Source: Klebsormidium nitens (taxonomy: Eukaryota; Plantae; Klebsormidiophyceae). From it: a stretch of 64,000 nucleotides of DNA. A program made the translations under genes and the position numbers. The stretch covers positions 62,001 through 126,000 of the forward strand of contig DF237114.1 in the NCBI GenBank assembly GCA_000708835.1, in the 5' to 3' direction. Positions 7,701-44,450 of the stretch are shown here, piece by piece; the stretch's first letter is position 1; every line of letters begins with the position of its first letter. A model generated the notes under the pieces. It made no database searches. It was not told the DNA's origin and was given only the letters and a program-made list of their open reading frames with translations.

Positions 7701-10700
7701 CTCAAACTTGTCACTACCTTAGAAAATACTGATTTGAAGCGGAAACCTTGGAGCTTTCTACCTTGGGAAGTTTGTTGAGGACTGCCCATATCGTGTGAAA
7801 GAACGGTGCCTAAACGCCGCTTTGGGCCCTTGTCGGGATGTATATTATCACTTGTATGTTTTTGAGTCGTCTGTGATTGGGCAAGGATGTGCAAAATCCG
7901 GCGCCTGGAGTCATCTGTAATTGACAGGATGCGTCGGTCATCGTTTTTTGAGCCCTCTCGGCGTAAAGTGACAAGCTCTTGAACACAACGGAATTTGGAA
8001 GGGGAGCGTCAATGCTAGCAAATGTTGTTTGTGAGACACTCCAACATTGATTGTACAAGCAAAGTAGAACTCTCGCCGAGCCTCTTTATTATACGTTGAG
8101 TGAGCTCGCTACACGACTTTCTCTGTGCTGGGCATAGTCTGAAGCGCTGTGATTGCATGTCCGGTGAAGGCTGCTGATCCAAAGTCGTCCCGTTAGATCC
8201 GTTTCATTTCAAGGCTTCGAATCCTTTAATGGGCACTACGGGGCGCCAGCTCACTTGTAGATTGTAGTTTGCCAGATCGCTGGACGCTTGCGGCTTGCCC
8301 CCGGCTTGCATGTGAGCCGTCATAATCGGTCGACTCGATTCTTTTGCAGCCACGCCACCCGTTGTTCAGGATCTGCCAAACTGCGTCCATTTCGAGCTGA
8401 AGACTTGCTCAGACTGTAAGGATCGAACTAGAAGGAAGATTACAATGGAGTAGAAGTCAAAGTCTTAACAATTTTATCAGCAGGGTCGAAACGACTGCTT
8501 TCCATCGATTCAGGTCCAAACTTACAGGCGATTATGGAATGGTACATCTAAGATTGGCTGCCTTAAGGCTCGGCCAGAACAAAGAGGCTCCCTTGATATG
8601 CCACGTACTTTAAGGGGAAGAGCTCCTTACGGCAAACTCAGGCAGCGCTAAAACGTGAAGACTATCATCTTATAACTAGTGTGAGTTATCTTGACGGCGC
8701 TTTCGCGGGCTCTTACCCAGCTTTCTGAACAGGCTTGCTGCATATCCGGCCGCAAAGATAAGTACGCAGATCTGACACCAGGACTTTCACGGTCCCAAAG
8801 CATCCTATAAAATGGAGCGCGCGCGCACGATCCGCTGATCATATTGACTGGCGGGCATGAAACGTTGCACCAACCCATGCAGTGCGGGGGCGCGGTAAAG
8901 AACCGTTTGTCGGTCTGGATACCGGAATCTTGGACTAGTTGGCTTCTTACAGTTGTTTGAGAAGCTTGCGCGCGGCCAACTTATATGCATGCGGCCGGCC
9001 TCGGCTTCGACCGCGGCGCAAAACCAGTTACTTGCATTCCGAATTCTCTTCTCGTCCTGCTCTTTCTGCTGTCCAAAACAGCAGTCAGTGATCTACCACG
9101 CGGCAAGGACGAGTAAGTGCTCGCTTGAAGATGCGGCGAGCCCAGGTCGTGATGTTTGCAGGCAGTGGCCCCGAGCCGTCTCGGAAGTTCTCCTATTTTG
9201 TCGCTCGTTCTTCTCGACGTTGCTCTTGATCTCGAGGACGATTAGACTAGAGCTTCTTGCCTTCCAGGGTATCTTGAGGAAAGTTCAAAGGGCCTTAAGA
9301 GCAGTGCCATTTGCTGATTGTTGCTCTTGGTAAGGCCCCTTCCTCCGCTCAAAACCGTTTGGCAAGCCCGGCGATTTCTCAGCCGTGCCGCCGGCAAGGA
9401 TCTGCTGCAAGCGACGGCGACTGCCGAAATTTTCATGACTCGGGCACGAGCGCTCTGAGAGGAAGCTTCGTCAGCTTTCCGCATAAATCTAAACATATCT
9501 TGCAGGAACGAAAACTTACATATGACGGCAGTAGTGGCAGCAGTTACATGTTCTTTGAGCGGATCGCTTTTATAACGGCGAAAGGGGCCCCGGGCGATCT
9601 CGCACGTTCTAGGAATTGGTTATCTCTTCCAATTCGACCTTGTGATACAGGCTTACTCTGTACCACGCAATCTGGTTAGCGATTTTCATATATGGTCGTC
9701 GACAGATTATGGGTGCTGAATCAAGAAAATCTACTTTTGTGTTAGCAAAGAATGTGTTTGAAACTAGCGGACATGATGCGCCATGCTCACTTGCAAAAAG
9801 TAGATCTTGCACTTAGTGGTTGCGCTCGGCGGTACGTTTTACTTCGACGGTCGTGCCATCGAACATGCATCCTTGTCTGCCACGTAGAAAGCTCTCTCTC
9901 CACGCGAGCTTCATCAAAATTCAGGCGATGATGTTGACTCCATGATTGGTTGCTGGAAGGCGCGACCAGACAATTTCATCATACTCGAGAGGCCGTTACT
10001 CCGAAGACGACTCTGTTACGGCGGGTGCGTGTACGCCGCAGACCGTTTCAAATATGGTGACGTCACGGGGTGGGAAAACACCCCAAACGCGTTCCAATCC
10101 ATTTAGCCCACTCGCTTGAAATTTTTCTCACCAGAATCATACCAGGAACATAAAATTGTTTGATCAGATTCGCCTTGGCATGTCGAGAAGTCCTTCGGCC
10201 GCGCAAAATCTGGGCTGATCCACGTGTCCGAGATGCGATACGATTCGGACAATGGACTTCCCGAGCCACAACGTCGTGCGTCTGCTGCCAGATAGGAACT
10301 GTTTTGCAAGAACGCTGCTCCTGAGCCGGCTTGTGAGGGCCGACACTGGTTCTGTTTCAATCCCTGAGAAGCTCGTGGCAACCGAGGATGACAACATTGG
10401 GCTGTTCTTCGTTTCACGGTAAAAAACTTTTCAGAGCACCCTTCTCTTCGTATGCATGCATGCGTGCCACTGCGGCAACTGCAAAAGTGTTAGCGCAATT
10501 TTGTAGCTTAATTGTTCAAGGGCGTGTAAATTCTTGGGTTCTTCGCGTCCTACTTGATGTATTTTGGTTCGAACTTTTCTCTCACTTAATGCTTCACGTA
10601 CCAAGTAGGACACGAAGTCTCAGTCTCTCAAGGATGTCTAGGCTGCTGCGATTTACACCCCTGTTGATTGCGAGAATTCCCGCATATGAACCAGCAAGTG

Positions 10701-15275: not shown

Positions 15276-18200
15276 AGTGACGCTTCGATCCAAGAATTGC
15301 TTCGCCATGCACTACCGGTAGCTAGTGAACGGTACTCCTAATATGTACCAAGGTAGGTACTGACGGCCCAGTTTCACGATTTGTTGTATTGTACTGGTAG
15401 TTGTTCAGGTACCTGGAGTACCTAAACGCCTAATTTCCAACTTGCCTACCGTTTTAAAAGGTTTCATGAGAAACTCAACCACTTGTCAAATGTGGGTTCC
15501 AGGCTTGTGAGCTCCCTCTTCTTTCCATTAGGTACTCACCACTTTGAGGGTAAGGTATGGTATCCTGACCGGCATCCCTACCTGGTTTGAGAATATCGCA
15601 CTACCATTTGCCCCTGAACTGCATGAGGACGGTGGACCTGTGACTCTTACGGTGTGAGAGCTAGGAGCAGCTGCCAGCTCACAGGTAGGTGCAGCTCTGG
15701 AGCTGCGCAGTGCAGCTGAGAAACACCCTAGCTACCGAAATAGGTAAGTACAAGCTGTACATATCCATAGCGTATATTGTTCTATGTACCTGGTACCGAC
15801 GTGCACGCCCTCAGGTCCGCTTGACTACAAACTCATCTCGGGCAACAACGTCGCCTGTTTACCTAGTGCATGCATGCAGGCGCAACAAATCTAGGGTCAG
15901 CGAGCGAGTTTGCGAGTCCTCGTGAGTAGTCGCCACGTGGCAGTCTGTACAGGCGGACCCTTATGATCACATTCTTTGAACCCTGAATGCTGCAGAACAT
16001 GATACGGAGAACTACCGTAGCTTGGAGTTGAACACCCCCAGGCGTACTGGCCCCTGGGTGGTACTTCCCGATACAGTATAATACCGTATGCATTGATTCC
16101 AACACGCCACGGCGCGCATGATGCCAGTATGTACTAACATTCATCACCAAGAGTACCAGCTAGCCTCCGCCAACCAATGGTGCTGCTCATTCAATCAACC
16201 GGCCACCGGGCAGCACTGAGGCTGACTCGGACAGAATATTCTCGAGCCAAATGATCATTGCATCATTTCCGACGACTACCCAGGCCGGCTCTTTGCAATT
16301 GCTCTGATCGGGCTGCACAGTGCATTCATATTGTTGGGCAGGCCGGTCCGAGTCGCGGTACTTTACTGCGGCAGTACCTAGCTGGCTAGCTTGTAGTAGG
16401 AATGATTGTGATGTTTATCCTGAGCGCCAGATGTGAAGGCGCGGTAGGCTTAATGCGCCACAATAAGTCCTTTCAATAGCTTATGCAAGAGCCTGCTGTC
16501 GTTGTTAATTTGCGCCTAACGCCGCTGGCGGTCGATTCAATGTGTCGATCATCTGCCATTTAGTACAGATACCATAGCTTATGCGTATGGTGGCGATCTA
16601 TCTGAAAACATTGCCAACGACATCAGCACGACGTCTTACGTCCCTGTCACCTGATCCAAAGTCTGATGGTCGTTGTAAGTTGTGGCGGCTCGACCATATT
16701 GTGAATCATTCTGACAAGAAGCTCCGCAATAATCTCCGAAAGCGCCGCATTCCAAACTCGTCGGACCAAGCTGATTCTGCGCTTTCTCCCGCACCCTGGC
16801 GTAGCTGCAGCGCGCAAATCAGTAGACTCAACAGAAGCGCTTGTACCTTACCACATTGGCAGTCGCGATTACTGACGTCATCACTGATCCACTGAGAGCT
16901 CGATCCAGCTCAATGAGCATGGCTACCCTGTCGGCAAAAAGCGCGGTGTCGGGCGCGCAAAGCAACATCAGCGCGCGCGCCGCCACTGGAGGGAGCACCA
17001 CCGCGATCAAGGCGTATCCGGCCACACAGGTGAGCCGCGGTTTTCTGCTCGATCTTGTATGTTTTCACTTCGTCACGATCTGCCTACTATCAGGTGTGAT
17101 CAATTGACTCCTATGGAATGTTTCGGTTGAGTGGCAGCTCGCGCTTGGATCTTTGAGCTTGGTGGCAATGTAATGGACTCCTGTGCTTTGTATCGGCGTC
17201 TTCGATCTGTGATGTTCCATTTGCTTGGAGCGAGCTGTCCGGAAATTTCCCCCAGCTCGTATTCTCCTTGGCTGACTCACTGGATTTTTTTTCGCAAACC
17301 CCGTATTTGTCCTTTCAAAGGTATGAGCTTGGATTGGTCTAGTACTTGTCTGATATGCTGTATCGATCGCCAGGCTCCAATGCTGAAATCTGCAGCCAGC
17401 TGTGTAGTGTGAGTGCTTCCTCTGCTTCATGGCTATGAGAAAGCGTGGGCTGTATTCAAACCGTGTTTTCCAACTTGGGAAAACCACCTTGGCATGATCT
17501 TATCACAATCATGTAGTGAACTAAATCCTGGCTATGTGGGCATGTACGGATAATTGAACCTTCTCCTTGTGCTTTTACTCTCCTCGATGAACGTTAGATG
17601 CCTGGAGGTCACCCCCAAAGTTCCCCCCGGCCCCCGACACAATCGTATTCGAGCTGGTCCAAAGTCCATCTCCATCTGCATGCATCAGAACCTTAGGTGA
17701 GCTGGTGATCAATTTGGATCAACTGGCCCCTTTTTCTTTTCAGCAACAGCACTAACCGGGTGTTTGGTCTCTCCTCCAACACAGCTGGGTCGCTCATCAA
17801 GCCGGCGCTCGTTTACTGTGTCAAGGGGAGCTGAGAAGCGGGCTCCCGTTAACAAGTCAGTCAGGTGAGGTGTTGATCTGGCTCCAAAGGAGCTGGGGAC
17901 CAGTTGAGTTTGATAAGGTCAAAGCGATTTTTGCATTCCGGGAGAAGCGCCATTGGGACCCCTTGGTCCTGCGCGCATGGATCCAGAGCAGGGCAGTTGG
18001 ATGCTGACGATCTGATGGATCTGAACAGTGATTCCTAGCTATGTCTATATATGATAGAACCGCATGCGGGCCTATTTTGTCTATAATGGAACCGCATTCG
18101 GAAGGTCGAATAAAAACCGCCCTGCATTGGATACAAAAATATAGAGTGTCTGAAGCTCTGTGCAAGAAAACCACAAAGGTTGTGCCACTTAGTTTGCAAT

Positions 18201-18513: not shown

Positions 18514-21500
18514 GTGCATCGGGGTCGCGCCCCTTGGCGGGGGGCTCGGAGCACTCCCTCAGCAGCCGGCGGTCCCTCAATTGGGTGCTTCCCCGCAGCA
18601 GTTCACCCAGGGGCTTCCAGTCTCAAGCCCAGTGCCACAAGGCCTCCCCACTCCAAATGGACTTGGTAAGTTCTGGTGTTTGGAAGAGAGAGGCTACTCC
18701 CTGAGACATTGTGTGCCTGTCTTCAAGGTTGGCCTGGAAGTCTGTAGACTTATGGGCCAGGTGTTGTGACAGCTTCTTATGTGAACGAGGCTCACTCGAA
18801 GGTTTTTGAAGAGGCTGTAGCATCTATTATCGATCTCGAGTACTTTCCTTGCATGCAAAACAGAAGCCTCCGAAAAGACGAACGAATTTGGTCGACTTCA
18901 TTGCCCACTGATAATTGTCGTATGATTGAGAAGGACTTCCTGCTTTAGGTATCGGCCATGACTTCAGTTCATCCGATCCTAAGTGCTCCGACGCCCTGTG
19001 GACCTATTGTGCTTAGTTGATCACCCGTCAATGAAACTCTCAAGAAAGTTGACTCGCGCAAAGCCGAGACCCTGCCATCGTAACAACTGCTCTACGCTAA
19101 ACGTCTGTCCTGAAAACGAGAGAATAGCTGAGGAGAAATTGCGTCATTAAACGAGGGCATCATCAAACGAGGGCAGCTTATTTTGCAGGCGGGCAAGCGA
19201 CCGGGCTCCTTCCCACCGTGGAGAGAGTGGTTGGAGTCGGCGGCGCACCGGGAGTTTCCGGGGCGGGTGGCCTAGGTAACGCCCTTAATCGACACACATC
19301 GTGTTCAGCTGGCACCAGATCTCTGCTTTTAAGAACCGGATTATGCTCATCCATGCAGCCTTACACCAGTGACTTGGAAGATATAGCTGGCTGCCGTTGA
19401 GTCCGGCGCAGGAAGGAACGAAGAGCTTTACGATTTTCAAACAATTTCAGCTTTTCTGTAAAGCTGAGCTGGATTCGAACATTGATTGTCCAGCCAGAAT
19501 AAGAGTGTTTCGACTCGAAGATGACTTGCAACTGTGTGCCATTTGTTGACTTATGAATGTTCGTAAGTGAGGACGTTACCTTGAAAGGTTCGATTGGGTG
19601 AAGGTTCGCTTTTGTGAATTTATATCCACGTTAACGCAAGTTCACTTCGTGAATGCGTTAGGGATTCCCAGCTTGGCTGATGCTAGTAAGGCACATACCT
19701 TCCTGTGGACGTTGTTAATTTCGACGCAGCGTTTCAAATATCTTGGACGCAACCAAAGTGTGACTCTTGTACCACTCAGTCAAAACACAGTCCAGCTACG
19801 AGCCCTTGCCTACTTTCTGCACCTAAGCCTCGATTATCAGCGCGGCGCGACTTACTTTCGCAAATAAGGAAGCTTCTCGAACGCTTTTTAATCGCGTCAA
19901 CCGTTCTCTCGAGCTTCGTAGTTGTCTTCCAGTCAATAGGGGCCCTGTTGCTCTCTCTCCGTTTGTTACAGACGTTCCCGATTCCGTTTGTCATAGATAT
20001 TCCGTTCCGATTGTCAAACCCGTTCCGTTCCGTTTGTCAAAAATTTTTCGTTCCTTTGTTTACAGGTGGCGGACAGGCATCTGGGCTCCTGCCGACCGTG
20101 GAGCGCGTCGTTGGTGTCGGAGGGCAGCCGGATCAGTCGGGCCAACAAGGTAAGGACACGTGTCAATAAGCGTACCGCCATTTTTGCAACTGAGCTGGAT
20201 CACAAATCGAGTAAAGAGCGGAGAGAACGCGGTTGGCTGGGCCTCTCACTTTTCGACTGCCCACATGTCAAAATTGATAGTACAGCTGCGGTCTACTTGG
20301 TCTACTTTCAGTCGGCAGCTGTTTTAAATCCCCCCGACTTCTATCAGATTTGTTGCGACGTTGACACAGCTCGCCTCGTCTGTTTTACTTTGTCGGGACG
20401 TCCACTTCCACAGACTGTCCGACTACCACAGATCGTCCTCCTTCCTTATACCTTCTTCAGTGAGGACTCGGAAGCTGTATTTGTGTTAGCTTTTTGCCCT
20501 ACGTACAAATTTTCTGATGTACATTACAAAACGTCGTATCCGTTCCTACAGGCTACGCCCAGCAGCCCGGTGCTTACCAAGGCCAGAGCTCCTACGGCAA
20601 CGGCCAGGTTCAGCAGACGACAGATCCCTACTATGGGCAAAACGCGAACTATGGAGTAGCCCAAGCGCCTGGTAAGCGTTCTGCCGGCTAGTCGCAAACC
20701 AATGGTCGGAAAACTTTGGCTGAGGTTGAGTTCAGAGGATCTTCGCCAGAAGCTGCCCGTCGTTGTTTGTTTGTACGAACCGTTTGTTTGCTGCACATTT
20801 GGCGACGTAACGCTTGTACGTGCGTCTAAGAATTCCGCACCCAGATCTCGGGCAACATGCGGCGTATGTGTCGTTCTGCGCAAGCAGTAGTAGGGTTGTT
20901 ATTGCTTTTTGAGAGGAGCGGTTCTTCTGCACAAAGGGCTCTACAGTAGCCTATGGCTGTGGTTGTGAAAGCGACAGTTTTTGAGGGCATTTTATGCGCT
21001 GCAGGAAACCAAGCCGGTGGGCTCCTTCCGACGGTGGAGAATATCCTGGGCGTTGGAGGCCAGCAGGGAGGGCTCGGAGGCGTTGCAGGTAAGTGCTCGT
21101 ATGTGCGGATTTTGCTGCATCGTCCCGGCAAGGGCTGCGTTTACTTTCGCCTAACGAATAAGTGTGCCCCTTGAAAACAAACAGCTTGAATAGACAAAGG
21201 TATTAATGGGGAAAACTTAATCTGAATCAAGGCATTCTTGTTTCGGCGTTCTTGCGGATTTTTGTGGTGTGGGGCTTTGTCCTCGTTGGAGTGCCCTTGC
21301 AAAACTCGACACCGCCCATGACGCGTAAAGCGTCCACCGGTATAGCGTGTGCATCCTCATGGTCCTTCTTCTGTGTCGATTGATCGTCCTGTCCCCTGAA
21401 ACCGCGGGCTGGTAGGTCAGAACGAATCTGGTCAATTTGTCCCCGCCCTCCAGCTTCAACGCAATCCCAAACTTCTTCGATGATTTTCACATTGCCTAAT

Positions 21501-30500: not shown

Positions 30501-33500
30501 AGCAGGGCGGTTTCCAGCAGGGCGGCCAGCAGCAAGCTTCTAACCAAAGGGGTCCTGTCTACCAGCCGGGCGTTTACCAGCCTGGGCCCTTCCAACCGGG
30601 CACCGGTCAGCCGCCGGCCGTTGCCGGAAACGGGCGCCCAACCCCGACCCCGCTTCCTGCTCCGTTAACCGACACCAATGCGACCACTGGTACGTACCGC
30701 CAGAACCGTCCGTTCGGAGCCTCAATTCGCTCTGAATTTGTCACGTATGCCGGGGTCGTACGCAGACTGCTTGAAGAGCCACACTCACAAGGGCTGCTTG
30801 TTGAGTTAGTCATCTTGCGCGCGTCCTGTTGTGTTGACACGTGGCATCCCAAGCCGGGAGCCACATTTAGTACTGCAAGGCTGTTTTGAGCCACTGACTT
30901 TTGGAGTCTCACAGTAAAGCTTCGTATCAAGCCGTTCTGCGGCCAACCACTTTTTTCTGCAGTTTTTGACATGTCACCACGTGGCTTTCATGCAGGCACG
31001 CACAGCTGGACCACTGGGAGCTATGAGGAGGGCACTGCGCAGGTGCACCACCACGTGATCAACATCCACATGTGCGCTGATGGGCGGGTGGTCCCATCGA
31101 CAGGATTGACGAGTAAGTACACGCGATCGTCTATGTTGCTTCGAGATTCCTGCGATTGGACCGCTTTTTAGTTGGATGCGTTTGACTTGGATGAAAGATT
31201 CCTATCGAGGTTGCTCCTTTTGTGGGCTCTCAATCTGCTCTTCTAAGCCGCATCCCAAAGGTGCCGTATAGAGTTTACTAAAGAGCAATTTCGCTCCTTA
31301 TAGCCAACGTTATCCTTATACTTCAGCTTTTGAGATAACCTCGTTTCATTTGTAAAAGTATCCGTTAGCGAAAAAGAGGTGCAAGCTGCGCGAGAGCCTG
31401 CGTTCAAACCAAGCATCTGCTCTGACTAGAGTTTAGACATTCGAAGGTTCTCTTGTAGTAACGTAGAGCGTTTTTTGATGGCGGGGAAGCATATGATTCT
31501 ATTCGACGCCCCAGCTTCTTGCCGGATGAAGCATTGTGGTTCTCGCCGCTCACATCAATTCCTCCAGCGAACAGCCCAATGGCTTCGATATCCGCTCTCT
31601 TTATGAATCCCAGCCTACTAGCGATGGGGACGTATCGCATCGTGCGCCAAACGGGCCGTTTTGTGGTGCGCGTATCAGCTTTCAACTCCAAACTGAAACC
31701 GACATTCCAAGAATCTCAAAAGACATTGAGAGCGAATTGTCAAAAACTCCAGACGGCATCAGGAGCCAATTTTGAAGAACTCAGCCGACATGGAGAGCAG
31801 ATTTCAAGAACCTCAAACATTCATCTTCGTCTCCCAGGTGTCACCGGTAGGCCGGTCGTTCGTGTCAGGCTCCCGACCACCGGGGCCTCTGCTTTTAATA
31901 CTTGTACACTTGCTTTGATCTGAGATGACGTCTCTTCGCGCGCCAAATTTTGGTCATCTCCGGGGTGCGAGTGTCAACCCACAACAGCCATGTTTCACAC
32001 CCACTTCTCAATGGTTTAATACGAAGTTACCTCTCGTTTCCAGGTGTAACCGGTCGGCCGGTCGTTCGCGTGAGGCTCCCGACCAGCGGGGCTTTCTTGC
32101 ACGTGGAGGCGCAGACGGCCGAAGAGGTCTCCCAGTACTTCTTTTCCCTGGGGCTCGGCAGCGGGGCGCTCCAATCGTCGAACAGCGTCGGGCTGCTGCA
32201 ACCGGGCACTACGTTGACCCATGGCGCGGAGTATGTCTACATCTCAAGCAACCTCTCAGGTGGGTTAACGCTCTACCACAGAAAGATTTGGCTGCTAACC
32301 AGGCTCGCTAACCAATCTTCAGTCTGGTTCTTGACCAATACCCGCGTCATAGTCATGTGAGAAACCTGGTCACCACTCGATTCTGGACAGTTGACCAGCT
32401 TCGAACCAGCCCGTAACCTACTATGGGTAGCCGCCAAAACCCTTGTGTACTTACTGATTTTGACAGAACGGCTCGTCAACAAAGGTGGCGATGAAACGTT
32501 GGTCTGGTCCTTTATCACTTCCTTCGCCGGGGTTGGCACTAACGTATGATGATCAAGAAACGTTTATCTCGTAATTTCAGTATCCCAAATCCTTTCCACC
32601 TTTTCCAAGTGGTCTTTAAATTCGTAATCTATCTACGATCCCGTAGCTTGAAAGGTTAACGTCGTGCCCAATCACGAGGGTGAGAGACCAACAGAAACAC
32701 ACACCAGAACTTTCACAAAAGCCTTGCAGATGTGATAAACACGGCGTTCAGTCGCGAAGCTAAAAAATTTCACACATTACAATCCCAAAAGCTGACAGAC
32801 CTTGGAAAGCTTGGACGTTGAGAGTGATGTCGCGAATCTTTTCTCCCCTTGCTGACGTAACAACGCTTGCACTTTTCTACTCAGAATTCCCCCAACCCCA
32901 CTGCCAGTTGAAAACTGTCAGACCTGCGGACAGATCACATGAACTTTAATCGTGGTTGAGGCGGCTTATCGCCAATCGCAGTCTAATGCTTAACCCAGTC
33001 TAATGATCGAACCAGTCTGATGCTTAACCCCTTCCGTGCAGGTTTTGGCTCCTCGACTTCCGGAGGATGGAACACAACTTCCGGGGGATGGAACAATGGT
33101 GGTAAGAGCTCGAACTTGAATTTGCTCAAACTGACTATGGGGTTGCTGCTCGGACCTTGCGTTTCAGTTGAGCGCGCCGCATGGATACTAGCACGTCTTA
33201 TGGCAGATCAGGCTCGTCCTCTCTTAAGTCCAAACTCATCCTTGAGTTTGCACAGGTACATATAGAAGGTCGGAATCCAGATTGATTGGATTTGGTACAA
33301 GACCGCCATGGCTTGACGCACTTGAGCTTTCTCTAATGAAAGCAGCCGTGAACGATTGAATGAATAGAAATGGGAAAAAAACTGGTTTTTCGAACTTTGC
33401 TCCTTCACTTTCTGTCAGGCGTGGGCACCCTTACTCAGGCGCGTCCGATGATCGCCCCTGGATTTGGAAGCTTCGGTGAGTATTCGTAATGATTGATGGG

Positions 33501-36500
33501 AAACTAAGCGCGAAACTTTTACACCGGCGTCTCGTGTTACGTATGGGTCTTCGAAGGGTAACAGAGATGCGTCTGGAACGAAGTTAAGTGCGACCACAAC
33601 TTCCTGGTCATCGCTGCAAAAGGAAGGAGGACTATTGTTGCGGCGGCCTCAAGCCGAAATACCAACTTAACCGTTCCTCCGCACTGATTCAGCGTCCCCT
33701 TAAACCACCAACCCACTGCTTTTGAAGACGTCATTTGCGCCAGCCTGTTAACCAACCTCTTTAAGAGAGTTTCTAATCTACGCGTTTCTAAGAGGTTGCG
33801 TCTCCAGTCTTCCGAATCCTCCATCTTTATACCCTTTGGTTATCCTCATGTGCAGGCGGTCAATTCAACCAAGGCGGTCAATTCAACCAGGAGCAGTTCA
33901 ACCAGGGTCAATTCAGCCAGGGACAGTTCAACCAGTTTGGACAGGGCGGCGAGGGTTCCGTGATTACCGGCGGTGCTGTAGGCGGTAAGCACCTTCACGA
34001 CGCTTCTCCTTGAGACATCTGGTATAAGATCGAAAAAGTGGCCCGGAATCTGCGGTTCAAAAGCGCGCAGCCGTATGCCGCAGGAAAAGGTCGAGCACCC
34101 GTTGACACTAACTCAAGACAAGCGGTGGCGTAAGCTCTGGTTCAATTCAAAATTAGAGGGTATCGAACAGGTTTTGTCTGGACTGTTCACCCGATTCTTC
34201 AGACGTTCCCGCGTCTACAAACAAGAGCTTCTGTGAGCAGGCGCGACAGGTCGAAACTAGTGGCAGTTTCGTTTGACCACCCCGCACTTCCTTCGGTGTC
34301 CCCAGCTCCTTCTAAGCAACTCTCCACTCCGTTTTTTTCGTCAGCAATCCGGATGCAATTTGTCTTTTCCTTCTTCCCAATTAGCCTGTACGGAATAACG
34401 CAGCAACTTCTACGAGCTTCTGTTGGGCTTCGATTCCAATTTTGGAACTTTTGGTGTGGCATGCAACTCTGCGCGTGTTGGAACGGAGAACAATCTAGAA
34501 TAGGATTCAAAAAAAATCGAAGTTAGAGGTATCTAAATCTCACTCACTGCTCTCACAGGAGCGGCGTTCATCATCGTTCAGAGTGCCAACGGCATCGAGA
34601 CGATCCGCGTCCCGCAGCAGACCGTCGGCTCGGCCCTGGCTTACCTACGTCAGCTCGGGTTCGGCGAGGGCGTGCTCCTGGGCGTCGACGGAGCGCAGCT
34701 GACGTCACAGAGCATCCTGAGTAGTGGCGGACAGTACTTCTTCCGCACCCAGAGTGAGCAGTGCTTGCGTCAGCCCACATATTCCCGTATTGTTCTAGGA
34801 AGTTTTCTGGCAGAATGGTACTCGTGTGGTTCACAAGCGGTTCCGTTTGTTATTGCCATTCTGAGAAGGGTTATGCTTGAAGGCCTAGGTCCCCCTATCA
34901 CAAGAGTGTAGGCCCTACTAAACGTAAAATTGGTCTAACGGTAGTTTTCCCAGTTGGGCGCTAACCCTCAAAGCATCCCCCCCTGCACTTAACACGTGAT
35001 TTGAGACGGGTTTGATTCACTTTGCAACAGTCATAGAAGGATCACCATTTTCTTTCGACCAGATTGTACCCGTTTTGCAGATCGGATTTGACATGCTTGC
35101 CGCACGCATGCCTTGCTAATTAGTTTGGCTCGAAACTTTCGAGGAGATAGTTGCTGATGTATCATTCTCCTGTCACAGCTGATTTCAACTCATGGGGCTC
35201 GGGAGTAGCTACGGGGAGCAGCAGCGGATTCGTCACTTCCGGCCAGCAGGGCTTTGGTTCCGTCCAGCAGGGCTTCGTCGGCCAGCAAGGCTTCGGTTCC
35301 GGCCAGCAAGGTTTCGGATCCGGCCAGCAGACCGGCAATTTCACTTCCGGCCAGCAAGGCTTTGGTTCCGGCCAGCAGACCGGAATCACTTCCGGTCAGC
35401 ATGGCTTCGGTTCCGGCCAGCAGACCGGTTTTGGTTTCGGCCAGCAAGGCTTCACTTCTGGTCAGCAGAGCGGCTTCACTTCCGGCCAGAGCGGCTTCGG
35501 TTCCGGCCAGCAGACTGCCTCCATTACGTATCCTGCACCAGGTTTGTGTCTTTTGTTTTCTGAATTGACCCCCAATTGTTATTATGTCACGCGCTTCTGG
35601 TTACATCCCTATCACGGTAGGACTCGGCTGGAGAATCAGCTGAGTCTATTAACAAACAAGGATCAAACGCGCAGCTCGTTTCTTTTTCGAACGTCATTCG
35701 TACTTCGTAGAGATAGTTTTGATCTTTCGGCATGTGGAGTAGTGGTGCCGTTTATTCCTTTTTGTAAACCCCTCGAAAGCGTGCAGTGCAATTACCCCAC
35801 AGCTGGTAATATCCGGTGAGACCGACTCTCCGAACCCAGAGCGCTCAACCGCATCCTTCACCCGATCCTCAACCTATTTCATGACCCGCTTTCTAACCTC
35901 TAAACTCCGCTGATTTTAGGACCGTTTCAAATCATCCAACCCGGTTCATAACCTAATTTTCTAACCAAATATTCATTTTCCGTTTTGCAGGACCGTTCCA
36001 AATCATCCAGCTGCCCAGCCAGCCCGTGAATGTGACTTCGTTCCAGACTGTGGGCCAGATTCTCCAGATCCTGGCCACACGGCCGGGCTACGGACCGGGC
36101 GTGCTTCACGCCGGTAACGGCGTCGTTCTGCAGCAGAACGAGCTGGTGCTGCCCGGGAGGGACTATTTCTTCGTCGCCCAGTCGCACTTCTCAGGTAGGT
36201 CGGGTGATTCGAAGTCAAGAGTCTTGCGCGCATGTGGGCGACGCAGGACTTCGGCGCCGTAGTACCTGCCAATAGGCAATCGGATCCCTCCACTAGAACC
36301 AAAACTGCTTTTTTTCTCGTGAAGTTTTCAAATAACGAAACAGAACCCAATTTGACCTTCTTTCTGAGCCAGCTTGTCACCTAGTAGGATAAGAGTAGGG
36401 TTGGTACAATGTAAACATGGTCTGTCCATTCAAACAAGTGGACGCAAAGGCAACTCTTCGTGGGAAGTCCAATTCAATCGAAATGAATTTTTTTCATAGC

Positions 36501-39500
36501 TGCTCCATCCTCGCTAAATCTACGTACGTTTCTGCGTACTTTGGCCCGAGACTGCAGGTCGACGACTGACGGATACCCTCGTATTCTGACAGCTCGTTCT
36601 GGACCTTCAGCGAACTTGATTTGTTTTCAACAGGAATCTTTCTCTGCGGATGCAAGACTTCTCCAGGATCTCATCGCCTCGCAAAAGGACTTTTCTTGCG
36701 TCAGATTAATACTAAGCATGTGTGATCCCTTGTGGTTTGCAGCATCCAGCTTCAACTGGTTCACGTCGGGCGGCTCCACGGGAACGGTGGGCACTTCCGG
36801 TGGCATCGGAGGTCAGACCGGTACGTTTTTCCACAGCCACTTTTTTGGATTTTCCTTTGTTCGATTCTATGAAGTAGTTGTAAAACAACGCTCGTCAAGC
36901 AGGGGAGGCCGTTTCCTGCTTACTCTGCCAAGAAGTGACGACACCGAATAAGGCCGAGCAAAGACTTCATGATCAAAAAAACGAGAAAATACCTTGAGGA
37001 CCAGCCAGTAAAGTCTTGGGGATTTGCATTCAAGAATGGTAGCTGGCAACCTGGAATTGTACCGACGACCCCGTTCTCGAGTTCCAATCCGCCTCCCATT
37101 ATGATGCGTAAACTCCCACGTATCTTCAGAGTGATTGCCTGACCGTCTTTGTAGCTGAAGTCATCAAATGATTGACTCCCCTCCGATCAAGCTTTCTGCC
37201 CACGCGGTTCAAAAATGCAAACTCCCCTTGATTCGGCGAGAGTAACCTGGATTTGCCAGGAAACGTCACCCATCTGACGTGTGATTGCGTTTCCTCGCAT
37301 CTGGATCGTTACGGAATGTCACCCATCTGACAAGAGTCACTGCGTTGTTTTGCTCGCAGGTAACCCCGCCACGACCAGCCCCGAGATCCGCATCACCAAC
37401 CCCCGGGCCGGGGTGTCCATGATTGTGCGCGCGCAGACCGCGGCGGAGGCGCTGGCCACGCTCAAGCCGTTCATGGGCGAGGGAGTGCTTCAGTTCCCCA
37501 ACGGAACGCTCGTGAACCCCAACGCCTTCCTCTCGCCGGGGCTCGTGTACACCTTCGTGCCTAGCATCCCCAGTAAGTCGTTTGTCCTTTGAATATTCTG
37601 CTTTCCAAATCTGAGGATGGCGAATGTGAATCGAAATGTTCTAGCAGCAGAAGCAGAGCCTGCTTACCGATTGAAGAAGCAGGTGGACGTGCAAACGCAG
37701 TGACTTTTAATGTGTATTGTGATGATCAGAGGAGGAAAGGGAAGCTCCAAAGAAGTAATGAGCGGGAGTGCGGATCTATAAGGTCTCCTCACGACTGTTG
37801 TGTGCCCATGTGCAAGAGCAACACGCGTCGAAGTCTTCTCGTCTGAACTTCAATGGTGAACTCAAGTATCGTTGAGCTTTACATCGTTGCTTTTGGGAGA
37901 ATGTAACGTCGGTTTAGGAGGATGTGACGGTTTGCTGATGACGCACGTCACTAAGAAAGCAACCGTTGGTACAGGCGGTATTGTGCCTGGAGGAGGCCAG
38001 CAGCCTGCCGGCGGTATCGTGGGTGGAGGTCAGCAGCCTACCGGCGGTATCGGTGCAGGTGGGTATTGCTGAATGAAAGTTGCACCCAGAGTTTACCGTT
38101 TCATTCTCATTCTTCCAGAAGGGGAGTCTGGCGGTCAGAAGACGCTTCGCTGGGTCTAGCCTCAAACTACGAGCCATGTTCAAAGACAATGCGCAAATCG
38201 CCACCGCTCCACTATTCTCAGTACGTTGAACCCAAGCAATGCGCACAATCCAGCAGTTGGCAACAATTGGAGTCACGGACGCCAGAAGGAAAAGTTAAGA
38301 GTTTCTTTCGTGGCTGCTCAGCGAAGCTTTGATGCAGAATGAGCCGATCACAGCTCGTTGTGCATCGTATATTTGTTCTGTTCTCCGCGTGATTTGTGGA
38401 TGGTGTCGAGCGTCGGATGCTTCACGGGTCCCATCATTTTGTAGTCGAGAAGAAGTTTCGAGGATGCGTGACTCAGAAGATGCTGCCCAAGTTGCCTTGG
38501 CGTAGCTCCCCTAGTAGCCTCTTCCTTCATTGATCCGGTTACTCTGCCGATAAACGCTTGATTGCAGAATAAGTTGTAGATGAAACCTGGCAGGTCTTTC
38601 TGTTCATCTTCCTGAGAGCACAATACCTCCGAGCGTTCTCGCAAGTGCAACTTTGCAAATCAGATTTCTATCTTAAAATAGTCACTGAAAGTCATTCCCC
38701 GTAGACTTGCATGTCAGCTTCCAGGGGAAATCCAGCGGCCAATTTATCGGTGTTCCATTTGGGCCACATTCGAATTTTCAAAAACTAGTGGGCACTTGGA
38801 CGCTCAGCGAAAAGTTGAAAGTGCCCAGTTGCTCGAACTGTGACCTTAACCGCGCCCAATTCACGTCGCCGCAGGTCCGACAAACGGCGCGGCGAAGGCT
38901 ACCGGTCAGGTGGTACGCATCACCGACCCCTCGGGAAATGTTGTGGCGACCGTCGAGCCGCAGACCGCGCAACAGGCGCTGGAGTACCTGAGGCGCAGGA
39001 TCGGGGACGGAACTCTGGAGTACCGGAACGGAACCGGATTGGCGCCCTTCACGCCTCTGACCGCTGGGATTGACTACGTCTTCAGACCGGTCACGCAGCC
39101 AGCCGTCCGGCCTCCGGCACCGGTCACGCCACCCACAGGTACGTACCGGATGTGATTGCACGGTTCCAACACGTCTGCTCCTAAAATCTTCACATCCCAA
39201 AAGCCTCAATGTTGACCTCTCGCTAATGTCGTGGGCGCTTTCACTGGTGACGTTGGTAGTTCTAAGTAATTGAAGACTTGCTTATTGTGTGAAATTCGCA
39301 CCCGCTTCTCTGGCAACCGGCTGCTGCGGTAATCCGCGTGAAAGTTCTTCTAGAAAGGTTCACGTTGAGCGAACGTACCCGCACAGGTGTCCCCGCTACC
39401 TATCAGGACACACAGGAATCTCTTCCCCTCACTTGCTGCCGGTTGTGGGCGCCCGACTTGCTGTTCATTACTAATTAGTTTCACCCGGTGTTTCCTAAGC

Positions 39501-42500
39501 ATTTTGGCTTCAGAAGGCTCGTCAGCCATGAGGTCAGCACGCGTCGACAGAGATGGCCACGGGTGGGGCCCACTTCAGCGGCTCTGTCGGCTGCTGATCG
39601 AGCGGGCGCATCCTTAGCTAACAACTTATGAAGCTGTTGTAATTGCTGAAGAACGTTCCGGTCCACATGATGCCAACTTTGACTAACTAGACAACTTTAA
39701 ATTCCAGGGATCGCTCAGCCGCAGCCCGTTATTCCGGCGCCCGTGTACCCGCCGCAGCCCATTTCCCCGCCGGAGCCCGTTTCCCCGCCGGAGAACTTGG
39801 TTATCTGCCCGCCGGCACCCCCTCGCCCCGAGCCGGTTCCAATGCCGATCCCGGTTAACCCGCCCGTCAACCCGGCCCCCATTAACCCGGCGCCTGTGGC
39901 CCCGCCGACCGTTGCGGGGCCCACCCTGGATGCATCGGGCAACCTCCCAGCAGACACAAAGAGTCTCCTGAGTGAGTTTTGGAAGACGGATGAGTTTTGG
40001 AGGACGGATGCTTCACTTACTTGAACACTTTTGACGACTACATAAACAGAAAGTAGAGTGACAGGTCCTCAATGAGAAGGTGTGTGCCGCTTCAAAGTTG
40101 CTTCCTCTAACGCTATTCCCTCTATGATGACCAGCAGTTCTGAAATCGCACAGAATTTTGGCGTGGAAAAGTGTCCGCGACTCCAGAGACTCATTCACCG
40201 ATCACGAAAGGTCACGCTTTCCAACGAGAAGCTCGTCAGCCAATCTTCTCCCACCAGGCCCGCTGAGCGCTAAAACCTTTTGAAATTCTCCAGGTTGAAA
40301 TCTTGCTATTTGTCTTGCTAATATGTTGACCAGTGTCCATTCTGAGGTCGCGCTTAGTAGTCATGCTTAACGACACCTTCCTTTCAGTCCACGAGGATTA
40401 ACATTCTAACTTTGAGCGGCGCAAACGCTATTGTCATCAAGCAGCAGGGATTCGCCTGAAACAGCCTGGCGGAGGATCAGCTGCGCTGATCACAAAACGA
40501 ACTGCGCGTTTAACAGACTGGTTCTCGTTCTCGTTTTCATCTTCGCAGAAATTACCGCAAGTCCTTCTCCATCATTGTCAAAAGACGGCGTCCCCAATGA
40601 TGAGACCTTGTTGAAACTTAATCTTCGCGGAAGCGTGCTCACTTCTGCTTTTCTGACGTCTCCGAAACTTTGCTGACGTCTCTCAAACTTCCTTCTCTCA
40701 GGGAACTGGGACTTCGAAGAGGAGAGTGACGCAGTCAAAGCAGCGTGCAAGAATGGGGCTTACCGCGCCGGAACCTCAAGCAAGGACATCACCTATTGGA
40801 AAATCACCAAAGGCGAGGTTGAGCTTATTGGCAGCGGTTATATTCGTGCTGCGCACGGTGACTACTACGTGGATGTCAACGGGTGGGGGAACGGCGGCAT
40901 CGAGCAGGTTAGACGCTAACGCAAACTGGGTTAACGCGTGGTTAAGCGCATTCCTCAGCGGCTGGAAACGCGGCAGTTCGAGCACGTGAATGCGCTGTTG
41001 AGTTCGTTTAACTCTCGGAAACCCAGATTAGTGAGTGCGCCAGGTGTTCTGTTCCCATTCTCAACTCTGTTCGGGTGGCTGTGGCAGAATATTCGGTTTG
41101 CTAGCTGCCAAGTACAGGTTTGAACGTCTCAATCTTGTATTGTTACCTTCCAACTGGCGATAGTGGCGCCCTCGTCTTGTGACCCATGGTTTGTGACTGA
41201 AAAGAAGGTTTTCCAGCGGGTATCTATGTTAAAACCTCATGCTGAAACCGCTATTCAATTGAATCTTTTGTCCGACCAAAAGGATCTGAACAATCTACAC
41301 GATTTCTGACCAGAGACACAGGAATCTTTTCCCCTGTTAACTATCTTTGGTCACCCGCCCTTCAACCAGCTTCTCCTTGCTAGAAAACCGCTTAACTGGA
41401 GAATAACCAAGCTCGGTGACTGCAATGTTCCCCCTTTCAGAGTGGCCTGGACCCTAACCCAACCTCGTTTCATTCATGTACCGCAGTCATTTGACACCGA
41501 GCGTGGTGCCACTTACACCGTCACCTTCTCCCTCGCGGCCAACCCCGAACACGTGGGAACCGACATCGTCCACGTGTCCGTGGGCGACGTCAGCCAGCCG
41601 TTCACCAGCACCAGGTCGCCGTTCAACAAGGCGGCGGGCCTGCCTTACCCCATTGACTGGAAGGACAACACGTTCGTCTTCACGGCGCAAGAGTCGGTCT
41701 CGACCATCAAGTTCGAGACGCCTTATGCGAACAAGTCGCCGTACGGAGCTTGCATCGACAACATCAGGATCGTCAAGGGTGAGCCGGCTCTAGCTTGGGG
41801 AGGGCAATTTGGCTGTCTGTAACCACAATGATTTTTGGCGGTTAACCATAGTTGGTTACGGGCTGGTTTGGAGCTGGTCAACCGTCCAAGGACCAGACTC
41901 GAGCACTGTGACCAGGTTTCTAACATGGCTATAACGCGGTTATTGGTCAAGGAAGCAGACTGAAGATGGGTTAGCGAACCTGGTTGGCAGCCAAACCTTC
42001 CTGTGAACAACAATAATGGTCAGATATTATACTTCTGTGGCGCAACAGTGTTTTCATCTCTGCACGTACGGGTTAGGGAGGCGGTTGCCCAGCTGCTGTG
42101 CTTCAAGGAAAGAGAAGAGAGAAACGAACATGAATCATAAGAGGGGCATGATCCTGCAAGTTATGATCGGCAGAGAAAAAACATCCCGTGTTTTCACGGA
42201 AGCAGCGCTTGTCTTGCCTACGCTCACTTCGATTTCTCATTTGCGTCTCTTCCAACTATGCAGGTGGTGTGCCGAATCCCCCACCCCGCAACCTCATCAG
42301 TGAGTCTGTTCACATCAGTTCCGGAATTTGCTGCATTGATGACGCAGCTCGTGTCTCTTTTGAACGCATAAGGCTTGCACTTGGCACACACGGTCACAGG
42401 AGGTTTTGCCTGCTAAGCAGGTTGTTTCTCAGATCTGAGTCTCGGGTTAGCGAACAGTCATCCGGGCGTCAAAATTGTTCGATAGCGCCCAAGTTAATCA

Positions 42501-44450
42501 TAGATGATTATGGGCTGTTTAGAAAGTGGTTTCCTGTTCGATGAATGAACTTTCTAAACAGCCCATAATCATCTATGATTTAAGGGCCAGAAATTTCTGT
42601 GGGTCTGTCCGGCTTTCATCTACTTTGTGGGAGACACTCACACTGCATCCAGATCTGTTGATGTCACTCGCTTACGTCACAGTCCTAGCTAATCCCACTT
42701 GAGCAGTGTGCGTCTGGTTCGTAGGTAGACGGTTTGTATCTAGTCAAATGCAAGTATCCCTTGTCTACTCGAGCGCACGTCCACAGGATTATCTGGCTCC
42801 TAAGCAGGCTGCTTATCAGACTCAGGTTTCAACAACGGCTATCGAACCTTCTTCAAAATCTGGTAGTCCCAAATTTGGTACCAGGATCGGTTCCAGCTCA
42901 CCGCCAGTTCATAAGCATCCACGCTTTGCTTGGCTATCCCCCGCTTGTCACCATCCATGGTTTAGGTACAATTCGTGATTCCTTCCTTGTAACGCTGTTC
43001 GTCCTGACTGTCCGCTCTCCACCCGCGCTCTTTGCGGTGCCCCCCTCGGACCTTCAGCTCCACGGGCGCGGGACTTTTTGATGAGCGCGCGCGCGCGCGC
43101 CTTCCACACTCTCGCTTCCAGGCGCGCGCCTACTCGCGCCCTTCAAAAAGACCCAACGCGCACTCCCGCTTCTTGCAGAGAACGGCGACTTTGAGGAGGT
43201 GACCACCACCATCGCTGACCAGTCGCAGGACTACAAAGTGATCTTAAAGGGCCAAAGTCACATCACCCACTGGGACATCACCAAGGACAGCGTGGATCTC
43301 ATCCACCGCGGGCCTTGGGGCTTCGGCCAGTCTGGGGACTACTTCATTGACCTCAACGGCAATGGGCCCGGCGCAATTGAGCAGGTGAGCGCCCACTAAC
43401 TAACTTTAATCGCTGGATCCACGCCTCTCCGTATGGTAAATAGTTTTGTCCGCACCCCTAGTTGAGAGACAGATGGGCCCGGCGCAATTGAGCAGGTGAG
43501 AGCCCACTAAGTGACTTGCATGAGCGCTGGATCCACTCTCTTCTTCTCCGCACCTCTAGTTGAGAGACGGGTCCCATTTGCGGTTCGTCAATGGCGACGG
43601 GCCCGGTGCAATTGAGCAGGTAAGAGCCCACTTACTGGCTGGATCCACGCCACTCCGTATGCTGATTCTTATTTTAGCACCTCTTGTTGAGAGACAGGTG
43701 TCCCATCCGTGGTTCGTCAATGGCAACGGGCCCGGTGCGATTGAGCAGGTCGTGAGCGCCCACTTACTGACTTAGGCGGCGGATGGATTCATGCTTCGGG
43801 TGATCTTCTGTTCTGCATCTCTGCTTCAGAGACAGGGGTCTTCTTCTCCGCACGTACCCCTATTTGAGAAACAGGTGTCTTCTTCTCCATGGTTAGGAGC
43901 CAGATCTTTCTTTCCTGCATTTCCTCTTCCCGCCGACTTGACACCGTCCCGAACGGCCAGTACACTGCACACTCGCAGTGTGAAGCCCAGCTATGTTCTT
44001 TTCTCCCGCAGAATTTCGACACCGTCGCCAACAAACGGTACACCGTCCACCCTTTCAGTGTCAAGCCCAGCTAGGTCCTTGAACATTCTCTTTTTCCCGC
44101 AGACCTTTGACACCGTCCCCGGGCAGACGTACACCGTCCGCTTCGCCATGGCGGGTCACCCCGGTCTGGGTAACAGCCGGGTCGGTCAGACCCGGCCCTT
44201 CACCGTCACGGTCGCTGACGTCACCAAGAACCTGGAGACTACCCCGGGGCGGGCCGCGACCGACATCGACTGGAAGACCGTGACGTTCGAGTTCACCGCC
44301 AAGGAGAACACGTCGACGCTCAAGTTCGAGAGTCGGGAAACCAAGGACGCTTGGTGGGGCGCGTACATTGACAACGTTGCAGTGACAGAGTCTGCGCTGG
44401 CTGGGAATATTGCGGAAGTGCGCCCGCAAGCGAGGTTCCTGTCCAGATAG
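18514..44450 (+). CDS. Giant multi-exon Gly/Gln-rich repetitive protein with five beta-grasp-like repeats and two DUF642/choice-of-anchor-C-like domains (5' end unresolved, about 1,920 aa)
   Basis: 43 GT-AG-bounded exons join in one frame: 18514-18665, 19189-19275, 20066-20149, 20552-20671, 21005-21088, 21517-21600, 21986-22069, 22294-22365, 22829-22936, 23358-23429, 23794-23892, 24263-24319, 24816-24911, 25190-25273, 25900-25998, 26152-26223, 26660-26755, 26981-27037, 27314-27421, 27738-27800, 28023-28127, 28608-28652, 29071-29280, 29927-30007, 30468-30689, 30996-31112, 32044-32259, 33042-33101, 33419-33475, 33856-33984, 34559-34753, 35179-35541, 35991-36194, 36743-36820, 37360-37572, 37975-38058, 38875-39138, 39708-39971, 40702-40907, 41487-41778, 42264-42299, 43179-43384, 44103-44450 (TAG). 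They sum to 5,773 nt. Repeat exons differ mostly at synonymous positions. Confidence 0.85.
24428..24585. repeat. Intronic tandem duplication, 2 x ~76 bp, period 82
   Basis: GCCCTTGCTTATTCGATTTATTGCATGGCCAAT(C/T)TGCGAAGCTAGCGAATCCTCTT(T/C)TGGCGGTACTACTAGTCCC at 24428 and 24510. Confidence 0.9.
24943..25070. repeat. Intronic degenerate 7-mer minisatellite (CTCCGCT)n
   Basis: Run of CTCCGCT/CTGCGCT/CTCGCT variants. Confidence 0.8.
27672..27714. repeat. Degenerate interstitial telomere-like (CCCTAAAA)n tract in an intron
   Basis: CCCTAAAA CCCCAAAA ATTCTAAAA CCATAAAA CCCTAAAA, just upstream of the 27738 acceptor. Confidence 0.45.
32044..39138 (+). other. Five exon-encoded ~60-aa homologous domains (putative ubiquitin-like beta-grasp fold) within the giant gene
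   Basis: Exons 32044-32259, 34559-34753, 35991-36194, 37360-37572 and 38875-39138 share the pattern [VI]x[VI]...QT[AV]xxx[LV]xx[LF]...GxGxL...[ND]G..L.....[LV]..G..YxF. Confidence 0.7.
40702..41778 (+). other. DUF642 / choice-of-anchor-C-like (galactose-binding-like jelly-roll) domain 1
   Basis: LL(R)NWDFEE...ITYWKITKGEVELIG...GDYYVDVNGWGNGGIEQ|SFDTERGATYTVTFSLAANP...IDWKDNTFVFTAQESVSTIKF...YGACIDNIRI matches the family pattern NGxFE...W.V..G.VD...DLNG...G.I.Q.F.T..G..Y.V.F.LA.NP...GP.LDNV as I recall it. Confidence 0.8.
42496..42580. repeat. Perfect 32-bp inverted repeat hairpin (21-nt loop), possible Tourist-like mini-MITE
   Basis: AATCATAGATGATTATGGGCTGTTTAGAAAGT (42496-42527) is the exact reverse complement of 42549-42580. 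TTA occurs at 42494-96 and 42580-82. Confidence 0.85.
43361..44102 (+). repeat. Intronic tandem copies of the upstream exon end plus donor (3 extra) and of the downstream acceptor plus exon start (2 extra)
   Basis: GGGCCCGG(C/T)GC(A/G)ATTGAGCAG|GT ends at 43384 (functional), 43495, 43619 and 43748. GACACCGTC-containing exon-start copies lie at ~43935 and ~44011, before the real acceptor at 44102. Confidence 0.9.

Follow-up and report, generated by a model that had tools for sequence, protein, structure and literature searches.

Tandem β-grasp modules have been described in several secreted bacterial proteins, including streptokinase, immunoglobulin (Ig)-binding domains, and assemblages containing SLBB and fasciclin domains (PMC1949818, PMC1796856), with the β-grasp-derived fasciclin domains being typical of secreted proteins (PMC1949818). 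Eap from Staphylococcus aureus is reported to be another secreted bacterial protein with tandem β-grasp modules (PMC9996362). Members of the SLBB superfamily are often found in multidomain proteins beside glycan-binding domains, and bear a pair of hallmark glycines, which precede strand 3 and directly follow strand 2, respectively (PMC1796856). A different kind of multivalent design is seen in Chlamydomonas SAGA1 and SAGA2, in which Rubisco-binding motifs and a starch-binding domain occur in the same protein (PMC10473226). The locus considered here lies in a 64,000-nt stretch of Klebsormidium nitens DNA (contig DF237114.1 of assembly GCA_000708835.1, positions 62,001-126,000, forward strand), hereafter the window, and encodes five divergent modules of ~65 residues, each on its own exon.

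These modules are probably paralogous β-grasp beads, members of a family as yet without a name, within a giant modular scaffold protein. What is new is the sequence family and the architecture in which it is found; the β-grasp fold itself is already known.

The module: exons, family and predicted fold

The window has the character of eukaryotic DNA, with short exons and ~51% G+C, and contains no tRNA or Rfam matches. The original prediction, made from the letters of this stretch, had described five divergent exon-encoded repeats at 32044-39138, and this description is borne out by motif scanning, splice signals and profile searches. A six-frame motif scan of the window gave exactly five matches, all on the + strand and at the predicted positions: module 1 (32044-32259, 216 nt), module 2 (34559-34753, 195 nt), module 3 (35991-36194, 204 nt, with a shortened first hairpin), module 4 (37360-37572, 213 nt) and module 5 (38875-39138, 264 nt, with a Pro-rich tail). 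Each module is one whole exon, with a pyrimidine-rich AG acceptor before it and a GT donor after it, and all five exons are in phase 1 at both ends, with lengths divisible by three.

The copies lack cysteines, share 29-36% pairwise identity, and have seven invariant columns (Q, T, G, G, L, G, Y). The shared motifs that had been quoted for them, QT, GxGxL, N/D-G and GxxYxF, are indeed present in all five, and each module ends in Y-x-F-(V/R)-P before passing straight into a linker. Leave-one-out profiles, run against the 1,478 six-frame segments of the window, recovered the omitted copy as the sole extra match in every case (E values of 1e-9 to 1e-15). A profile built from other loci, with the window and its orthologue excluded, recovered these five segments alone (E 1e-10 to 1e-25), and neither profile nor motif searches found a sixth copy in the window. 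The five repeats are therefore confirmed as paralogous copies of one real, conserved module.

An orthologous gene, carrying the same five modules in identical order, is present on a metagenome contig (L005/L008, JGI 3300060284). Between the window and L005 the module exons are 86-90% identical at the nucleotide level, and the introns are ~70% identical or unalignable. Pooling the five exons gives a synonymous divergence (dS) of 0.34 and a nonsynonymous divergence (dN) of 0.05, a dN/dS ratio of 0.15. Taken singly, the ratio is 0.08 for module 1 (orthologue at L005:4003-4209, 93% identical in amino acids), 0.17 for module 2 (L005:6093-6293), 0.08 for module 3, 0.35 for module 4 and 0.13 for module 5. 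Judged by these ratios, the module exons are under purifying selection. In a phylogenetic tree every window module pairs with its L005 counterpart, with support of 97-100%. The stems of these pairs are long, which marks the five copies as old rather than as products of recent duplication.

Searches of the named families were uniformly blank, in agreement with the earlier statement that no named family could be recognised. None of 26 family members matched Pfam-A even at E 10, including the models for ubiquitin (PF00240), SLBB (PF10531) and ThiS, and there was no match to NCBIfam or to PDB sequences using single modules, the 26 members, or the profile. An Atlas feature search gave no usable match. 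Rows for the MORN, RHS, FlgD_ig and PADRE families were rejected as being at chance level (E > 0.02); PADRE, which provided the top row of an Atlas shape search (template-modelling (TM) score 0.55) and one Pfam row at E 0.098, had no consistent sequence signal.

When the five-copy profile was searched against 1.84 billion representative proteins, 17 matches were obtained at E <= 0.001, 15 of them true relatives, all unannotated and each read from a single exon. These relatives are open reading frames (ORFs) of 69-157 amino acids, each comprising one module plus intron read-through, from unannotated contigs of algal-type environmental origin (two JGI metagenomes, a few Logan runs, and ENA). Two proteins were rejected as relatives: P0003, a tandem low-complexity artefact, and P0015, a bacterial filamentous-haemagglutinin-type repeat protein matched over 20-residue stretches. 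Among the 1.84 billion proteins there was no long or annotated protein with the module, and no bacterial relative. A word search with module 5 for spliced transcript fragments found one protein, P0018, which reads through into an intron and is therefore genomic, rather than derived from a transcript. The family has so far been found only on Klebsormidium-type algal DNA, and we read it as new, unnamed and lineage-restricted, with a known fold.

Two AlphaFold2 models informed the fold: module 5, using an alignment of the five window copies only, and module 3, using an alignment (A2) of 26 family sequences. The module 5 model has a mean predicted local distance difference test (pLDDT) score of 81, rising to ~90 in the core, and DSSP assigns strands at residues 13-16 and 22-26, a helix at 31-41, and strands at 45-49 and 67-71, a strand-strand-helix-strand-strand order. 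The module 3 model (pLDDT 77) reproduces the helix and final strands of the module 5 model. Foldseek searches of the PDB returned ubiquitin-like proteins exclusively (best E 0.014, TM 0.5-0.6). In a wide structural search independent of Foldseek, all 50 of the best matches listed for both models were β-grasp proteins, with ubiquitin-like (Ubl), Ras-binding, FERM F1 and MoaD/ThiS types among those listed. The best Z score was 7.3, and the module 3 model was aligned over 65 of its 67 residues at 2.2 Å; at rank 50, Z was still 5.8-6.0, higher than the 4-5 typical of the tool. An Atlas shape search likewise gave mostly β-grasp rows (ubiquitin, ThiS, Ub-Mut7C, and EccD, which we take to have a ubiquitin-like domain), together with others, such as PADRE, FtsA-type and Coilin rows, that could not be assigned to a fold.

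The module is thus likely to adopt a ubiquitin-like β-grasp fold, as had been proposed from its pattern of strands and helix. The support is of moderate strength, and consists of a common fold in both models and β-grasp structural matches. Mapped onto the model, the invariant Q-T falls at the start of the helix, GxGxL spans the stretch from helix to strand 3, and G-x-x-Y-x-F lies in the last strand. We read the invariant residues, as placed in the model, as fold-keeping rather than catalytic, and the module alignment contains no cysteines, histidine clusters or acidic pairs hinting at catalysis or metal binding.

Gene architecture and N-terminus

The modules alternate with low-complexity linker exons that are near-uncharged and rich in G, Q, S, T and F. 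These were found by scanning the window for phase 1-1 exons, and all are on the + strand: a G/S/T/W-rich exon at 33042-33101 (65% of amino acids conserved in L005), a probable small linker exon with strong splice signals at 33419-33475 (72% conserved), an exon with GQFNQ repeats at 33856-33984 (78%), a long exon of uncharged FGSGQQ-type repeats at 35179-35541, a further linker exon at 36743-36820 (80%), and one with GGGQQP repeats at 37975-38058, the same type being found before each of the three modules of a related locus, L007. The linkers are kept in L005, differing by repeat-unit indels. By composition, the linker repeats (35179-35541 and others) resemble cohesive FG-like or prion-like low-complexity regions.

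Downstream of module 5 is a Pro-rich exon (39708-39971, + strand), the end of which is conserved in L007:5631-5777, followed by two DUF642 domains (PF04862) encoded by several exons (40702-44450, + strand), with the stop codon at 44448-44450. The DUF642 matches at 41445-41777 and 44073-44447 score 34.6 and 41.4 bits (E 2e-8 and 1.6e-10), above the gathering cut-off of 27, and a further match falls below it (22.8 bits, E 8.7e-5). The C-terminal region also has a weak CBM_4_9 match (E 0.0014). DUF642 is a family known from plant cell-wall proteins; a search for literature on DUF642 together with Klebsormidium found nothing. On the other side, upstream of the modules, is an array of Gly-rich motifs and, just before module 1, a small conserved exon with a His-rich stretch (30996-31112, + strand, phase 1-1, 84% protein identity in the orthologue). 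At 31839-31890 (+ strand), 205 nt upstream of the real module 1 exon, ~50 nt repeat the start of that exon, namely its acceptor and first codons; this partial copy does not continue as an open frame and is called a pseudo-exon.

A comparison of the window with L008, the upstream stretch of the orthologous contig, gave a putative 5′ end for the gene. The putative first coding exon (16919-17029, + strand) begins with an ATG at 16919 and ends in phase 0; its frame and ATG are conserved in L008, where an in-frame stop codon lies two codons upstream. It would be joined to exon 2 (17785-17864, + strand, phase 0 to 2), whose splice sites and phases are conserved in L008, and to exon 3 (18514-18665, + strand, phase 2 to 1), in which the Gly/Pro/Q-rich region starts and whose frame is 81-83% conserved between the window and L008, compared with 45-66% for the other frames. 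The three exons fit together in both species, using the same splice sites and phases.

The first 64 residues predicted from these exons comprise 18 S/T (28%), 12 A (19%), 11 R/K and a single D/E, with a net charge of +10. Their highest 9-residue Kyte-Doolittle mean is 1.1, and the predicted N-terminus therefore lacks a signal-peptide core. Taking this putative start, its composition resembles that of a transit peptide for an organelle. The 6.5 kb scanned (12-18.5 kb) contained no hydrophobic first exon that had a usable donor. Hydrophobic ORFs with an ATG at 13554, 13557 and 16402 were considered as upstream signal peptides and rejected, having no usable donor and no conservation, as was one at 20857, inside the gene, which is not conserved.

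From these parts we infer one giant modular protein, presumably encoded by a single transcript, comprising the N-terminus, the Gly-rich array, the five modules, a Pro-rich hinge and the DUF642 pair. Related loci carry 3 to 5 module copies. L002/L003 carries five modules, of which three are near-identical, with a pair of DUF642 domains after them; in L007, three near-identical linker-plus-module units precede the Pro-rich exon and again a DUF642 pair. The order of modules and then DUF642 is thus kept at two further loci. In L001 the contig ends after at least three modules. As each module is a symmetrical phase-1 exon, copies can be gained or lost by exon duplication with the reading frame intact, and the sequences of these loci indicate that copy number changes by duplication of exon units.

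Some further observations concern the related loci. L007 has, at 700-4900, a recent tandem duplication of a two-exon unit formed from a linker exon and a module exon. L004 carries a divergent single module (3789-3935), with an ORF containing a Walker-A-like GPSGAGKT (4516-4986) ~0.6 kb downstream and no DUF642 near the module, and may represent a second architecture. L009, on the same contig as L002, contains a paralogous gene with tandem genomic repeats of ~770 bp (3400-10200), each including an exon in which a Gly-rich GVIGQLGDVVLG-type motif replaces the LLPTVERVVGVGG motif of the window. A search for the N-terminus of this paralogue gave one hydrophobic candidate ORF, near L009:1800.

Alternative explanations

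Several points weigh against the interpretation set out above. The structural matches are moderate (Z < 8, a range that the tool calls common, and Foldseek E > 0.01); confidence is low for the first hairpin in the module 3 model, with a pLDDT of 45 over the first 10 residues; both models were built on alignments of one family, and are therefore not independent; and the case for a single gene is drawn from splice signals, an unbroken run of phases and sequence conservation. An excess of N-x-S/T sequons in the family also hints at a secretory route, in conflict with the transit-peptide-like N-terminus. As the alignments hold just 5 and 26 sequences, the β-grasp model could be an artefact of their shallowness, the module instead having another small α/β fold or being partly disordered. 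Such an artefact is, however, improbable given that the core of module 5 was modelled with high confidence from five sequences, that the same order of elements came from two different targets and alignments, and that rank-50 Z scores stayed above those typical of the tool. The fold call carries weight because the match lists, over the 50 top matches listed in both searches, hold one fold and span the full module. Within the β-grasp fold, the module might be a very divergent SLBB or classical ubiquitin-like member, binding a soluble ligand or a partner from the ubiquitin system. Its last-strand G-x-x-Y-x-F-V-P recalls other β-grasp families, ubiquitin-like domains are its best structural matches, and the invariant GxG between the helix and strand 3 is near one of the SLBB hallmark glycines (PMC1796856). 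Such membership is nonetheless unlikely: the ubiquitin, SLBB, ThiS and other β-grasp Pfam models went unmatched at the most permissive threshold, no SLBB structure was present in the top 50 matches listed for either model, there is no conserved glycine after strand 2 (the SLBB positions being judged from a text description), the C-terminal diglycine that serves conjugation in the ubiquitin family is not present, and the 1.84 billion proteins included zero bacterial relatives.

The location of the protein is more evenly poised, with roughly an even chance that it is organellar, a clearly smaller chance that it is secreted, and a still smaller one that it resides elsewhere. It had been put forward as a putatively extracellular structural protein, a proposal that is not supported by the predicted, conserved N-terminus with no hydrophobic core or by the scan of the 6.5 kb upstream, where no signal-peptide exon was found. 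Secretion to the wall or extracellular matrix, with the modules serving as mechanical or structural beads anchored by DUF642, has a modest likelihood. It would account for DUF642 domains above the Pfam cut-off, in a family familiar from plant walls, for the Pro-rich and Gly-rich low-complexity exons, and for the sequons (19, against 7.7 +/- 2.6 in shuffles, a 2.5-fold enrichment inflated by sequence relatedness); all of these point away from an organelle. Klebsormidium walls are also required to flex on drying (PMC10762512). This reading is opposed by the low hydropathy of the N-terminus, by the retention of its ATG, splice sites and phases in L008, by the failure to find a signal-peptide-like first exon within 12-18.5 kb, and by the absence of cysteines from the modules. 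Were the protein instead imported into the chloroplast, it could link components at the pyrenoid or starch in a multivalent manner, contacts being made by the modules and the Gly-rich motifs and glucan being bound by DUF642. The transit-peptide-like N-terminus, the repeats carried on flexible uncharged linkers, and the carbohydrate-binding-type C-terminus (DUF642 and the weak CBM_4_9 match) would suit such a role, and pyrenoid linkers are lineage-specific repeat proteins (PMC10473226). DUF642 is not known to bind starch, however, and both the sequon enrichment and the known context of DUF642 indicate the cell surface. A plastid linker of this kind has a small likelihood. Slightly less likely again, and drawn by analogy, is a more specific form, a pyrenoid or starch-sheath scaffold of a streptophyte alga, in which the five β-grasp modules and ~20 Gly-rich motifs would make contact with a client, be it Rubisco or some other protein, with glucan gripped by the DUF642 pair.

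Proposed role and known systems

Returning to β-grasp beads within a modular scaffold, the modules would be non-enzymatic folded beads, the simplest reading of units that are carried on flexible linkers and differ in number between loci. Acting as spacing and multivalent contact modules in a beads-on-a-string scaffold, they would be joined by the flexible, uncharged, G/Q/S/F-rich linkers, with the C-terminal DUF642 pair tying the scaffold to glycan. Domains of ubiquitin and protein G withstand being pulled from end to end, and in a wall the beads might likewise carry load. In a plastid, their counterparts would be the recurring contact units found in the linkers of pyrenoids and carboxysomes (PMC10473226).

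With this locus the β-grasp fold gains a family that has no Pfam, NCBIfam or PDB sequence match, is restricted to one lineage, and whose gene is absent from the protein collections searched (15 billion sequences). It also illustrates cleanly how domains can be shuffled in a streptophyte alga by way of symmetrical phase-1 exons, related loci having different numbers of copies. If the transit-peptide-like N-terminus holds, a ‘wall-type’ architecture of Gly-rich, Pro-rich and DUF642 regions would belong to an organelle, and the protein would become a candidate for a pyrenoid or starch scaffold in the algal lineage nearest to land plants. If it is secreted, the protein would be a rare example, among eukaryotes, of a wall protein with ubiquitin-fold beads in tandem, here in a desiccation-tolerant alga.

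Among described systems, the module is closest in predicted fold to the ubiquitin-like β-grasp domains (Ubl, Ras-binding/Ras-association (RBD/RA), FERM F1 and MoaD/ThiS), with which it shares size and the predicted strand-strand-helix-strand-strand order, and which provide its best structural matches (Z 6-7.3, covering nearly the whole module). It differs from them in matching none of their Pfam models, in lacking a C-terminal diglycine, and in occurring five-fold on low-complexity linkers within a giant DUF642-bearing protein. With the SLBB superfamily it appears to have in common the predicted β-grasp and a conserved glycine before strand 3. Unlike SLBB domains, it seems to lack the second hallmark glycine; it does not match the SLBB model of Pfam, and its top structural matches include no SLBB domain. 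SLBB is mainly bacterial, and no bacterial relatives of the algal module were found among the 1.84 billion proteins.

Streptokinase, the Ig-binding proteins and Eap resemble the algal protein in having several small β-grasp contact modules in a row (PMC1949818). These are, however, bacterial virulence proteins with no sequence relation to the algal protein, which is eukaryotic and has one exon per module. The original prediction had also called tandem Ubl-like modules in an extracellular protein unusual; given the bacterial precedents, ‘unusual’ holds chiefly for eukaryotes and for the architecture seen here.

The small-subunit-like modules of cyanobacterial CcmM are multivalent linker units of CO2-fixing condensates, and a chloroplast linker built of folded modules, as considered above, would by analogy be convergent with them. 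The comparison with CcmM, and with EPYC1 and SAGA1/2 (PMC10473226), is one of analogy only, and the algal protein has no recognised starch-binding family. These proteins and the algal protein share repeated units, putative contact units in the alga, on flexible linkers, and lineage-specific sequences, and the resemblance to SAGA1/2 extends to a carbohydrate-binding-type end, combined in the algal protein with a predicted N-terminus that looks organelle-type.

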